From Paragordius varius (lineage: Eukaryota > Animalia > Nematomorpha): a DNA stretch of 64,000 bases. Below, in pieces: positions 1-59,655 of this stretch (within the stretch, counting starts at the first letter, position 1; the number at the start of each line of letters is the position of its first letter). The translations under genes were made by a program, and so were the position numbers. The notes beneath the pieces are model-generated. The model worked only from the letters and a program-made list of their open reading frames with translations, made no database searches and was not told where the DNA came from. The stretch covers positions 1,302,001 through 1,366,000 of the forward strand of contig OZ176055.1 in assembly GCA_964247055.1 (NCBI GenBank), given 5' to 3'.

Positions 1-1900
1 GAGAATTTGATTGAACCGTTTTATAGTATGAATCGAGGTTTGTAAAAGGTATTTCAATCTGACACATATTTCCATTGAAAGACAATTCATAGAGAAAATA
101 TGGAATTATGTGACTTATGGCATTTCGATTAATCAAAAGTTCACAAACTGTGCTTGAAGTTGAGGTTAAAACGCAGATTATATCACATATTTGGGAAATA
201 AAAATTTCTTCATGATGCTCAATATCAAAGAGCCAGGTATTTGTGTTGGTAATATATTCTAAATCAAATTCCGTCTTTTGCATGAAAACTACTATGCAAA
301 ATATAGCATTCAAAAGGTAAAGACTCAGGGTTTTTTCAGTCCAGTCCGATGATGGAGAAAATTGTTGAGCGACATTAGAGGAGTTGAGTATTTTTAGCAC
401 TATTTTCCAATCATCACAAGATTCTGCAATATTTGCATTCGGCGTAAGTATGAAAGAAAGTTTGAGATAGATTTTGCAAAAATTTGCTATATCATAATTT
501 TTTGGATCAGGATCAAGTTTATCACCATGTATATATTGTAGCAATTTATTGTAAATGACTGTTTTAAGTTGATTCAATAAAGGTATATAGTAATTTAATA
601 TTATCGAGTATTGTTTGACAATTGTTGCGATATTAGCCACAATATTATTGGCGCAAATTATATCTTTTGCAATATTATCAAGATGTGTTTCAATACATAC
701 GATCGCCTGATTGATGTCTAAATATGTTTATAGAAATAATAAAGCGTTCGAATTTTTATTTTTACAATAAATGACTTTTTCAGTTGTTTGAAAAATTATT
801 GTGCCCAAACAGTCATAAATCGGATTATTTATGTTTCCCACATAATATAAAATAGATTTATAAAGACATATCAAACCATTTTTTGCATTGTTTATCATTT
901 TTACTCTTTAATATTAGACATTTTACAATCCTATAATTAGAGATTTGACCGTAAACGAATAAATGAAAAAAATAATTTTAAGGTAGGATTTGGTTTGCGG
1001 TAACTGGCCAAAAAATTATCACGAATCAATACGCTTTTAAAAGTTAATTACGATAATAACAGGTCAAATCATACTTATCGTATATTTAAATAAAAGATAC
1101 TGGGGTTGATAATAATTTTGGGTTACTTATATTTATATTAACATATGTTCATAACTTTTATAACGGTTATATTTAAACAGTTACAGTTACGGTCATTAAT
1201 GCATTAGTAACCGGTGAATCCCGAAGGGTATACGTCAAAAATTTGAGCAATCATTAAAATTTAAACTACCTCCATAGTCTCCGGAATATATAGCAAACAT
1301 TGAATTATAGGATAGATAAATTAAATTTTCTACTATTGACATATTAAAGCCCAGATTATCGTATAATTCTTGAGTTATGTTAAACGTAATTTTTAATTTA
1401 ACCAATATTTTTGTAAACCAAAAAACTTTTTCGGTTAATTCTTTAAATTTTTCTGGTTCAAAAATGTCGTTTATGGGGATGTAAATTGATCCAACAATCG
1501 TGCTATATATCATGGTAAAAAGAAAGTAGTCTCCAAGATAAATTGCATTGTTTTCGGATTGTTGAGACTTTGTTAATTCAAGTATATGATTCCATAAAAT
1601 AGCATAAATATTTTTGAAAAAGAGCTTAATTTTATCATTTTCACACACCATATCTTTATAGGTCAGGAATATATATCGAACAATTTTAAGGACACATTCA
1701 TCATACCCCTAAAATATATTAAAAATCACTTGAGATATGGAATAACGCATTATTTTATATAACAGTGTTATAGTTTGATGTTTATTTAATTTTAATTTTC
1801 CATGCAATAGAGTTTGCATATTTTCTTCATAATTTTCTATAAAATCACTTTCTTTTATAGCATTAAGATCCTTAGCAGACAAATTTGAAGTTATCAACAT
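1..1900 (-). CDS. Unidentified protein-coding gene, 3' end runs off the window (exons 1900-1730, 1708-1270, 717-<1; >440 aa)
   Basis: ORFs 1709-1900 and 1235-1651 are in the same frame, separated only by a TAG that ends a 21-nt GT..AG segment (1729-1709). A phase-1 donor (GGA G|GTAGTT, 1269) joins a phase-1 acceptor (TTTAG|AC, 717). From 717 the frame is stop-free to base 1 (DINQAIVCIETHLDNIAK...YYKTVQSNS). No family motif recognised. Confidence 0.7.
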
Positions 1901-1976
1901 AGCGAATAAATTTTTTAGGCAGTATATTTTAAAATAAGCGGCGGGGTTATTTTATTCATACCTACAGCTAACTCAC
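1901..1976. promoter_or_regulatory. 76-bp head-to-head intergenic region, putative bidirectional promoter with a GC element (GCGGCGGGG, ~1938-1946)
   Basis: Divergent ATGs at 1900 (-) and 1977 (+); the only GC-rich motif in an AT-rich spacer. Confidence 0.55.
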
Positions 1977-57900: not shown

Positions 57901-59655
57901 TAAAAATAAAATTAAACATGGCATTTCAATTTTAAGAAAATGATAAAGCAGTTTAAAATAATTTAAAGTTATTTTAAAAAATTATTTGGCCTTTGGGCAA
58001 AATTTTGAAACGCAATTTTCGGACATGCTTAAGTACAATAAAAACAATTATTGCAAAATTTAGTGCTACAATAATTATACAAAAAATAATCCGTACAATA
58101 TAAAATAAAAATAACTTTGAAAAAACAATTTAAACATTTTAAAGTTTTTCGAGAGTAAAAAAAGTAAAAAATAAAAAACAGTAAAAGCATCATATGCAAA
58201 CACATTTAGATATATTTTTCTATTTCTAAAAAAACCAAACCCGAAGATAAAGATAACTTAAAAGTTTAAAAAATATGCTGGAAACAATGTTTGCGAATGG
58301 ATTTAAAAATTAAGTTTTTAAAGTATATTTGGGAATATACATTTGTAAAACCGATATAACTACTTATCTTTTCAGTTTTTATTTATTTATTTATTAAATT
58401 ATACACAAAATGTTATTCAACAGTAAATAAATATATAAATAAAAGTGCCCCAAGTTATTCAACAAAAATTTATTAAAATAAAGCTTTATTGAAATTCAAA
58501 ACTTTTTATATGTTAAGTAATAAAAAGATAAAACTAATATAATTGAGTGAAAATTGTAGTTCTTATCTATAAATATGAAAATATTTATTAGACTGAAATA
58601 TCTGTTTAAATCTTACAGTCATGTATATGTAGAATTGACAGAAATTCGTTTTTAAATGATTATAATTCGTTTTTAATTGTTTTAATGTATGATATGTCAA
58701 CTTTCAACATGCGCATTTTTAAGCATTAAAATAAAAATAGCTTATTTATTGTAAACAATTAAAAACAAAGTAAAATCAATTAAAAACGTATATCTGACAA
58801 TTCTAAGCATACATGACTGTAATATGGTTAAAAAAATAAAACAATTTAAAAAACACCTCAAGATTCTTAGAGAAAGGTCATATAAAAAGTGTGCCAATAT
58901 AACTATCAATATATGATTATTATATACCTGATTAGAGTTTTTTTGAATCGCATGAAGTAACCATTTTTCCACGCCTTTCCATAATAAATATTCATTTTTT
59001 AGACATAACTCAGACGATTTTAAAAGTTCTGTCAACTGATCTTTCTCTAAATTAATCCATTCCGATTCCCATTCCTCAAGCAATAAGTCATCCATTTTTT
59101 TGGCCAGAATGTTGACGCAGGCAGAAATAAGAGAGGTATGAAAACATTTTATGGCATAATGATACCAAATATTTAAAAGTTCTTTCAAATGTATTTGTGG
59201 AAGCAAATAATTTGTGGCATAATTAATTACAACCTAGTAAAACATATATAAATTTTTACCTTTTGCAAATCGCTTATATTGTATTTATCAGCCAAAATCA
59301 ATAATGGAAAAGCATCTTCGTAGTTTAAATTGATGCGACAAGAATATAAAAAATTTAAAAATTTGTCAAAAACTCTAGAACATTCTGCTTCTTCAAATAA
59401 ATTTAATTCATTATTAGAGCATTCTTTCCATTCTTCACTCAGCATTCTTTCAAAAACCTCTGAGGCCCGAACTAAAATTAGCTTGTGAGCATAATATCTC
59501 TCATCTCCCACGCATAATATAATATCACTTAGCAATGGATTGTTAAAAAACTTTTCCTGGTCATCCAAAACCTAAAAGGTAAAACTATAATATACTTGTC
59601 GGTCATTGCCATAGCATTGATGCTCGTTTAATATTTCTTGTATTGGGAGGTCCAT
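54922..59655 (-). CDS. BTB/POZ-BACK domain protein (BTBD17-like) with a C-terminal MATH/TRAF-like region, ~569 aa (exons 59655-59596, 59571-59260, 59233-58928, 55953-54922)
   Basis: SDIILCVGDERYYAHKLILVRASEVFERML and FLNFLYS..LLILADKYNI (BTB); ELCLKNEYLLWKGVEKWL and LVRFPMMTPNQL (BACK); WNWELKFYPKG..FQCYLY (MATH-like); all junctions phase 0. Confidence 0.9.
56011..56728. mobile_element. Foldback element with ~40-bp outer TIRs and an internal ~400-bp hairpin, in intron 3 of the BTB gene
   Basis: TATTATAGTCCATACCGTATTTTAAATGGCTAAAAG pairs with CTTTTAGCCATTCAAAATACCGAAATGGCCTATAATA; inner arms ~56050-56210 and ~56280-56450 include a near-perfect ~47-bp core. Confidence 0.8.
57070..57347. mobile_element. 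MITE family A copy with an expanded internal (TA)n; left end eroded
   Basis: Family A body and right end GTAAATGG|TA. Confidence 0.7.

Follow-up and report, generated by a model that had tools for sequence, protein, structure and literature searches.

Eight genes, with 39 introns between them, were examined in a 64,000-nt stretch of horsehair worm DNA (the window). Six are housekeeping-type genes that carry short introns: G1, which encodes a helical-repeat protein of no recognised family; PSMD8; EEFSEC; BCS1; HMGCS; and a BTBD17-like gene. The other two encode a serpin and a His-rich protein, both of secreted type. The genome is AT-rich, and the window is repeat-rich; GC and repeat content agree with a preprint on a hairworm assembly. 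In this small sample, intron lengths fall into three classes: 21-30 nt (eight micro-introns), 55-63 nt (three mid-size introns), and 102-2974 nt (28 long introns), with nothing at 31-54 or 64-101 nt. The features are listed in the table.

Table. Short introns, long introns, and one repeat element in the window (distances are from the start codon)
Feature	Coordinates	Strand	Length (nt)	Phase	Distance from ATG (nt)	Remarks
G1 candidate intron	1709..1729	-	21		171 (ATG at 1900)	GT-AG; sequence GTGATTTTTAATATATTTTAG
PSMD8 intron 1	2091..2119	+	29	0	+114 (ATG at 1977)	
PSMD8 intron 2	2193..2218	+	26	1	+216	
PSMD8 intron 3	2322..2346	+	25	2	+345	
EEFSEC intron 1	17437..17498	-	62	1	+46 (ATG at 17544)	
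EEFSEC intron 2	17157..17211	-	55	1	+333	
BCS1 intron 1	27630..27658	+	29	1	+100 (ATG at 27530)	
BCS1 intron 2	27882..27944	+	63	2	+352	
HMGCS intron 1	32639..32668	+	30	1	+121 (ATG at 32518)	
BTBD17-like intron 1	59572..59595	-	24	0	+60 (ATG at 59655)	
BTBD17-like intron 2	59234..59259	-	26	0	+396	
HMGCS intron 2	32853..33094	+	242		+335	Flanked by profile positions 90 and 92
His-rich secreted-type gene, single intron	42644..44381	+	~1738		+358	Contains a 300-nt repeat
PSMD8 introns 4-7, with exons between	2441..4324	+	276, 289, 361, 667			
EEFSEC introns 3-10, with exons	6671..16944	-	265-2337			Intron 8 boundaries approximate
BCS1 introns 3-6	28085..31007	+	519, 956, 439, 435			
HMGCS introns 3-8	33253..38810	+	752, 1802, 833, 639, 278, ~565			Intron 8 boundaries approximate
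BTBD17-like intron 3	55954..58927	-	2974		+728	One third is repeats with a further copy in the window
MITE filling PSMD8 intron 6	3214..3517		~300			Terminal inverted repeats of ~50 nt

All eight micro-introns begin with GT and end with AG, as do the three mid-size introns (two in EEFSEC, one in BCS1). The reading frame requires their removal: the three micro-introns with lengths divisible by three (21, 24, and 30 nt) each contain an in-frame stop, and the other five break the frame. The preliminary description, made from the letters alone, had listed these eight as necessary for the frame, and that list stands. Removal restores colinearity with related proteins for ten of the eleven short introns, in PSMD8, BCS1, HMGCS, EEFSEC, and BTBD17. 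After splicing, the complete models stay open from end to end in PSMD8 (822 nt), BCS1 (1326 nt), and BTBD17 (1707 nt). Seven of the eight micro-introns restore a conserved protein, and they are the seven named at the outset: the 24-nt BTBD17 intron is included, and the 21-nt intron is the exception.

PSMD8 exon 1 ends at residue 120 of human PSMD8, and exon 3 starts at residue 146; introns 1 and 2 are both supported because the intervening 25 human residues correspond to the 24 codons of exon 2 and a single split codon. Intron 2 is the sole GT..AG pair that keeps the frame at its junction. Once intron 3 is removed, the exon 4 motif AEFH aligns with human residues 205-208 without an indel; an alternative 22-nt intron (2325-2346) would leave one extra residue. 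EEFSEC intron 1, the sole candidate at its site, links NINIGIL to GHVDCGKT at the start of the GTP_EFTU profile. That profile reaches position ~88 at the end of exon 2 and resumes at ~90 in exon 3, with the codon split by intron 2 in between.

BCS1 exon 1 ends at residue 34 of mouse BCS1, the codon split by intron 1 is residue 35, and the second residue of exon 2 is residue 37; positions 14-94 of the BCS1_N profile then fall in exon 2, and positions 96-141 follow beyond intron 2, in exon 3. Positions 2-31 of the HMG_CoA_synt_N profile fall in HMGCS exon 1, and positions 34-90 in exon 2; intron 1 is the sole candidate there, and the unspliced reading meets TAA at once. BTBD17-like intron 1, again the sole candidate, links ...CYGNDRQ to VLDDQEKFFNN. 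In a comparison with seven homologues from echinoderms and molluscs, this joint is colinear with the BTBD17 motif DCYGNERxxLxDxxRFYNN. Echinoderm and mollusc homologues were the only ones returned by a search for a BTBD17 protein from this species or another hairworm. Intron 2, where the BTB domain ends, links ...ISDLQK to VVINYAT, also colinear with the homologues. Moreover, this 26-nt intron matches, in both codon boundary and phase, an intron of 116 nt in BTBD17 from the snail Biomphalaria glabrata; the position of the 24-nt intron 1 is without counterpart in that gene.

DNA reads bear on whether these gaps are real. Four runs were mapped to positions 1-6000, where introns and intergenic DNA are covered evenly; the reads thus behave as genomic DNA and are silent on splicing. 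Contigs from all four runs carry the four micro-introns of this region unspliced, with length unchanged and without joints. The haplotypes in these runs are 3-7% diverged. Across them, PSMD8 introns 1-3 show no indel (intron 1 has four polymorphic sites inside), and the long introns show many. Labelled RNA runs of the species gave no match to the sampled words.

Since the case for splicing is made from sequence, it could be argued that the gaps are not introns but errors of assembly, or the frameshifts and stop codons of decaying genes. This is extremely improbable. Contigs of four separate DNA runs agree in the sequence and length of the gaps; every gap runs from GT to AG in a GTA.../...TTTTAG-type context; removal yields exact colinearity in five conserved proteins; and one site coincides with a snail intron position. 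Eleven lesions that mimic introns, all in housekeeping genes, are not credible. Judged by their sequence, the short introns are ordinary U2-type GT-AG spliceosomal introns.

The 21-nt interval in G1 is a candidate intron, to which an open frame and codon usage point in place of any homologue. It takes out the sole in-frame stop between two open stretches in one frame, and codon usage in the upstream frame is coding-like (0.15, versus a null 95th percentile of 0.118). Alternatively, translation could start at a Met 20 residues into exon 2. Searches for the family of G1 returned no match in Pfam and only generic ARM/HEAT-like leads in the ESM Atlas; an exhaustive phmmer search of 1.8 billion representatives with exon 2 as query yielded one chance match, to a bacterial DUF5977 repeat protein. 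The preferred downstream model has a single 552-nt intron (1269-718). A variant with an extra exon (903-766), leaving either a 48-nt intron that would lie 1135 nt beyond the ATG (765-718) or a 135-nt intron, is disfavoured because this exon scores no better than the null for coding and because other haplotypes carry frameshifting indels, including a 1-nt insertion within the exon in one of them.

The short introns are confined to the 5' ends of genes. All eleven start 46-396 nt from the ATG. Just two long introns, HMGCS intron 2 and the intron of the His-rich gene, start within this zone of ~400 nt, as had been claimed for large introns, and the 26 introns farther downstream all measure 102-2974 nt. 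Across the 39 introns of the window, the association between position and size is strong (Fisher p = 4.7e-8), with the proviso that introns within one gene are not independent. In each of the six genes carrying both kinds, the short introns occupy the first one to three positions; for these six genes together, such ordering has a chance probability of 1 in 1,134,000 (~9e-7). Thus, the confinement reported from the first reading of the sequence holds in the window. That reading had counted 29 downstream introns; the size range is confirmed, but the count here is 26, mainly reflecting the simpler G1 model. The edge of the zone is fuzzy: long introns occur from +335 and +358, and a micro-intron starts at +396.

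Could the positional rule be an artefact of a small sample or of the gene models, with micro-introns in fact present throughout genes? Only eight genes are involved, and the alternative G1 model would put a 48-nt intron far downstream. We nevertheless regard an artefact as very improbable, given the two probabilities above. A frame-breaking micro-intron would show among the downstream exons, as these are uninterrupted open frames that run colinear with homologues, and publications on flatworms describe the same bias (PMC4040987, PMC3254664).

The long introns have GT and AG ends in 26 of 28 cases, the other two being those with approximate boundaries. Repeats account for part of their length. 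The clearest case is PSMD8 intron 6, where the MITE makes up 304 of 361 nt; the intron without it would measure ~40-65 nt. Self-BLAST places copies of this element at 9236-9533, 11570-11865, 57087-57353, and 61581-61826, and its word depth in the DNA runs is ~10,000x baseline. Read depth over PSMD8 introns 4 and 5 is at the single-copy level, and introns 6 and 7 contain very high-copy repeats. Grouping all ~300-nt self-BLAST intervals into one MITE family was considered and rejected, since in alignment only 3214-3517, 9236-9533, and 11570-11865 are coherent.

The downstream introns had initially been characterised as filled with transposable elements. This is borne out for the 14 of 28 long introns that contain a repeat present elsewhere in the window as well; several introns of 230-550 nt appear to be single-copy. 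Insertion is demonstrated for some long introns only, half of them being without recognisable repeat. By the same in-window measure, repeats make up 19% of the bases in long introns and 18% of those in intergenic DNA.

One proposal for the two size classes was that the genome runs two splicing regimes, with a specialised or cap-dependent spliceosome for the 5' micro-introns and standard exon definition for the long introns. The sharp switch with distance from the start is in keeping with this idea, as are the two discrete short sizes (21-30 and 55-63 nt), which resemble the ~32- and ~58-nt modes of Gyrodactylus. However, short and long introns have donor and acceptor hexamers of the same kind (GTA/GTT ... 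TTTTAG, ATATAG, TTTCAG), and the sequence gives no reason to invoke a second machinery. TTTTAG ends five of the eight micro-introns, with a T-rich run ahead of the AG in most; the eight sequences define no common branch motif. An Rfam scan at gathering score found no snRNA or spliced-leader gene in the window, so no snRNA gene here favours variant machinery. Furthermore, published work assigns the ultra-short introns of myxozoans and Stentor to canonical U2-type machinery. Taken together, these points make two regimes quite improbable.

A second proposal was that promoter-proximal chromatin keeps transposable elements out of ancestrally tiny introns. In its mechanistic form, promoter or first-nucleosome chromatin would physically block integration, leaving 5' introns tiny by default. 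In keeping with this proposal, the 700 nt downstream of each of the eight start codons are free of repeats that recur in the window, and MITEs do enter downstream introns. Yet two start codons have repeat copies a short way upstream, at 54 nt for BCS1 and at 153 nt for BTBD17: promoter-proximal DNA is both open to insertion and tolerant of it. The protected zone is one-sided, lying on the transcribed side, and is thus more in keeping with a constraint on the transcript than with one on chromatin. In addition, the start codons of G1 and PSMD8 are just 76 nt apart, and coding exons, which lack transposable elements for other reasons, take up much of the first 700 nt. An insertion bias therefore seems rather unlikely.

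Other parts of the preliminary description fare no better. Ancestral tininess is doubtful, because the only intron compared measures 116 nt in the snail. The secreted-protein genes, said to hint at a link with promoter class, are uninformative: the serpin gene is intron-free for its first 587 nt, and the sole intron of the His-rich gene starts at +358, at the margin of the zone.

These results suggest an explanation that we consider likely: the short introns would be minimal-length U2 introns, retained at the 5' end by a constraint that acts at the level of the transcript and does not tolerate growth of 5'-proximal introns. One spliceosome would process both size classes. Introns anywhere could expand through MITEs and other DNA, but expansion in the 5'-proximal transcribed region would not be tolerated, so that introns there alone would stay at, or shrink to, minimal size. 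The repeats just upstream of start codons are the reason for placing the constraint most likely on the transcript and probably not on promoter chromatin that blocks insertion. The selective cause that we infer for this 5' restriction may be cap-proximal splicing across the intron, or the avoidance of premature termination.

A broader version is no more than tentative and, on balance, doubtful: the first ~400 transcribed nt might be refractory to intron expansion by way of the nascent RNA, a property that would have arisen convergently in hairworms and parasitic flatworms. Candidate mechanisms would be intron-spanning, cap-proximal splicing and a promoter-proximal phase of transcription that must be cleared before a long intron. 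If the nascent-RNA version were true, micro-introns would point to a general constraint, so far unrecognised, on transcript 5' ends, and 5' exons would be systematically mis-annotated, producing apparent "gene loss" in these phyla.

Three consequences deserve attention. Micro-introns that occur in a repeat-rich genome, at gene starts only, make "tiny introns" separable from "genome compaction". The positional bias in flatworms has never been explained (PMC4040987, PMC3254664), and its presence in a second, unrelated lineage turns it into a testable comparative problem. Finally, common aligners and gene finders presumably set a minimum intron length near or above the sizes seen here, so the 5' exons of such genes would be mis-modelled. 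BUSCO completeness of a hairworm assembly is given as 71.6% in a preprint. Mis-modelled 5' exons could contribute to this low value and to reports that the phylum has lost genes on a large scale.

How does this arrangement compare with known systems? In vertebrates and Drosophila, first introns are as a rule the longest; length is likewise position-dependent there, but in the opposite direction. Ultra-short introns are found outside animals, in Paramecium (~25 nt), Stentor (15-16 nt), and chlorarachniophyte nucleomorphs (18-21 nt). Essentially all introns in these ciliate and nucleomorph genomes are tiny, with no positional classes. The hairworm introns resemble them in size range, and also in that retention would be caught (five frame shifts, three in-frame stops).

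Among animals, introns below 30 nt are published for two lineages only, Myxobolidae and Dicyemida, both with compact genomes (PMC13644364). In Myxobolidae (Myxozoa) and Dicyema japonicum, the median intron measures 22-27 nt genome-wide, and splice motifs are reduced to GTa...AG (Hadjez et al. 2026, PMC13644364). Common to these animals and the hairworm are canonical GT-AG introns shorter than 30 nt, positions between conserved exons, and a parasitic life. The hairworm micro-introns differ in that they are a minority set apart by position, in a genome rich in repeats, and keep a T-rich tract; positional bias is not reported in PMC13644364. Nor does the window look like a genome-wide ultra-short class: introns of 30 nt or less number 8 of 39, the median is ~440 nt, and repeats abound.

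The closest parallels are neodermatan flatworms. [quoted passage not shown] 2014, PMC4040987), and for Schistosoma mansoni (Protasio et al. 2012, PMC3254664). In Gyrodactylus, the shortest mode dominates ordinal positions 1-2, and the ~58-nt mode later positions (PMC4040987). The hairworm shares with these flatworms two discrete short modes, the shortest in the first positions, together with many introns from >100 nt to kilobases. It departs from Gyrodactylus in that its short mode lies below 30 nt, both short classes occupy the 5' zone with none downstream, and nothing falls at 64-101 nt. Horsehair worms belong to the Ecdysozoa, whereas flatworms belong to the Lophotrochozoa. A 5' bias of short introns is already known from flatworms, and the hairworm layout matches it with shorter introns.

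The positional observation is confirmed. In a table of 39 introns drawn from our own gene models, all 11 short introns (21–63 nt) begin 46–396 nt from the ATG, as the preliminary description had reported. The two long introns that it placed within this zone, the first ~400 nt, are also there: HMGCS intron 2 (242 nt, at +335 from the ATG), and the intron of the His-rich gene (1738 nt, +358). Its size range for introns farther downstream, 102–2974 nt, holds; its count of 29 becomes 26 (from +464 on), mostly because G1 receives one 552-nt intron (1269-718) in the preferred model instead of an extra exon. 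One reading of the extra-exon model would create a 48-nt intron at +1135, the window's only exception. That model was set aside: the exon has a coding score at the null level, and one haplotype carries a 1-nt insertion in it.

Lengths of 31–54 nt and 64–101 nt are absent among the 39 introns, and size is associated with position (Fisher's exact p = 4.7e-8). Since introns within one gene are not independent, the probability of within-gene ordering was also calculated: short-first order in all six genes that contain both classes has a chance of 1/(2 x 35 x 45 x 15 x 8 x 3), or ~9e-7. Within the window, then, the positional rule is real.

Gene models, mid-size introns, and a repeat family in the window
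Feature	Coordinates	Strand	Basis
G1, helical-repeat protein without recognised family	ATG at 1900, extends past window start	-	gene model
PSMD8	1977-4471	+	gene model
EEFSEC	17544-6671	-	gene model
EEFSEC mid-size intron, 62 nt	17437-17498	-	sequence
EEFSEC mid-size intron, 55 nt	17157-17211	-	sequence
Serpin, three exons, signal peptide	22990-24526	+	gene model
BCS1	27530-31296	+	gene model
BCS1 mid-size intron, 63 nt	27882-27944	+	sequence
HMGCS	32518 to about 39100	+	gene model
His-rich secreted-type protein, Tyr/His/Gly-rich, two exons	42286-44626	+	gene model
BTBD17-like, BTB + BACK + TRAF domains	59655-54925	-	gene model
MITE family, ~300 nt	3214-3517; copies 9236-9533, 11570-11865, 13704-13822, 57087-57353, 61581-61826

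Each of the eight micro-introns (21, 29, 26, 25, 29, 30, 26, and 24 nt) begins with GT and ends with AG where it had been placed. Their removal is indeed needed for the frame: five of the eight shift it, and those of 21, 24, and 30 nt each hold an in-frame stop. When all frame-keeping GT..AG pairs between the flanking coding stretches are counted as candidates, six short-intron sites offer one and the remaining sites two.

For seven of the eight, removal was further said to restore a conserved protein; taking out the short introns does so exactly in PSMD8, BCS1, HMGCS, EEFSEC, and BTBD17 (for the 21-nt G1 intron, see below). In alignment, PSMD8 exon 1 reaches human residue 120 and exon 3 begins at 146; the gap of 25 residues is accounted for by the 24 codons of exon 2 and a split codon, and exon 4 places AEFH on human residues 205–208 with zero indels. 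(Shorter alternatives of 20 or 22 nt were rejected, as extra residues would result.) Against mouse BCS1, exon 1 ends at residue 34, residue 35 is the split codon, and exon 2 continues from 36–37; the 63-nt intron is flanked by Pfam BCS1_N positions 14–94 and 96–141. HMGCS exons 1, 2, and 3 match profile positions 2–31, 34–90, and 92–137, and GTP_EFTU positions 11–86 and 91–153 flank the 55-nt EEFSEC intron. The spliced BTBD17 model aligns gap-free over all three junctions with seven echinoderm and mollusc proteins, and removing its 24-nt intron makes the conserved CYGN(D/E)R motif continuous with the BTB domain. Full spliced coding sequences are open in PSMD8, BCS1, and BTBD17.

Four sequencing runs, compared with positions 1–6000, look like genomic DNA: introns and intergenic DNA are covered to an even depth, and contigs cross the micro-introns unspliced, which rules out assembly error. 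In contigs of haplotypes diverged by 3–7%, PSMD8 introns 1–3 carry substitutions (four polymorphic sites inside the 29-nt intron) and no length change. Indels are numerous in long introns, including 1-, 2-, and 7-nt indels in that of G1; G1 exon 2 has a 3-nt indel. On frame and protein alignment, there is a high probability that the short introns are real.

Runs X4 and X5, which bear the same species label as X1, differ from the window by ~3–7% in this region, with many intron indels and with 120 unlike letters in place of the 104 nt at 726–829. This points to deeply diverged haplotypes or populations, or to cryptic species. Run X3, labelled as another organism, contains the same locus at low depth.

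The 21-nt G1 intron holds the sole stop between two open stretches of one frame, and codon usage upstream is coding-like (0.15 vs a null 95th percentile of 0.118). No G1 homologue was detectable; alternatively, G1 could start at a Met 20 residues into exon 2. The intron is a plausible candidate. G1 and PSMD8 lie head to head with start codons 76 nt apart (1900-1977), an arrangement that implies either a very compact bidirectional promoter and tiny 5' UTRs or trans-splicing of a spliced leader.

The long introns had been called TE-filled. With a repeat defined as sequence having another copy in the window, so that coverage is a lower bound, this is true of many (14 of 28 hold a repeat) and false of others, such as PSMD8 introns 4 and 5 (276 and 289 nt), which show single-copy depth. 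Repeats make up 19% of long-intron bases vs 18% of intergenic bases. PSMD8 intron 6 (361 nt) consists of a ~300-nt MITE and 40–65 nt of flanking sequence; the MITE has terminal inverted repeats of ~50 nt, and its word depth in the four runs is ~10,000 times the local single-copy baseline. The inverted repeats are made of ~20-nt units (GAACAATTCAAATTCACCCT-like).

What might cause the positional rule? Two splicing regimes had been proposed, but there is no sign of them: short introns resemble long ones in their donor and acceptor hexamers. Promoter chromatin had been suggested to keep insertions out, but two start codons have repeat copies close upstream, at 54 nt in BCS1 and 153 nt in BTBD17, whereas in each of the eight genes the first 700 nt after the ATG are free of them. 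The repeat-free zone is therefore one-sided, confined to the transcribed side, which argues for constraint on the transcript's 5' part. This counter-evidence is weak (n = 8), and such constraint is weakly favored over chromatin exclusion. The copy near BCS1 (27177-27476) is diverged, with ~75% identity to 20414-20662 and 45819-45999, and may contain or adjoin the BCS1 promoter. The secreted-protein genes, once taken to hint at promoter class, add nothing: the serpin gene is intron-free before +587, and the His-rich intron sits at the zone edge. (The His-rich protein has no Pfam match.)

GC ranges from 21 to 35% along the 64-kb window, in agreement with the Gordionus montsenyensis genome (26.9% GC, 64% repeats). 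At 49837-50339 (+), mir-10 family, let-7, and mir-10 family matches follow in a row (E = 1e-7, 4e-8, and 3e-4), all under the Rfam gathering score, so that a default scan is silent there; they fit a miR-100/let-7/miR-125-type cluster. Together with the animal genes, this cluster marks the source of the DNA as a bilaterian.

One intron position of the BTBD17-like gene has an orthologous counterpart. In the snail Biomphalaria glabrata, an exon ends ...DLRN before GTAAGT, and the next begins VCLD after ...CACAG; codon boundary and phase are identical to those of ...DLQK|VVIN in the window, but the intron is 116 nt in the snail and 26 nt here. The 24-nt intron has no counterpart in the snail gene, its nearest intron being ten codons off. 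Coding introns number six in the snail and one in the urchin Diadema. An intron at ...K|KEI(K/E)LVE, common to both, is absent from the window gene, which suggests that this lineage lost some introns besides shrinking others. The BTBD17-like protein also carries a ~135-residue Asn/Ser-rich insertion between BACK and TRAF, inside one unbroken exon (54925-55953) and missing in echinoderm and mollusc homologues.

Among animals, published introns under 30 nt are confined to Myxobolidae and Dicyema, whose genomes are compact and for which no positional bias is reported (PMC13644364); no mention of introns was found in the accessible hairworm genome papers. Position-biased short introns are already published for the flatworms Gyrodactylus and Schistosoma (PMC4040987, PMC3254664), so the window case belongs to that known kind, although its short introns are shorter and apparently in another superphylum.
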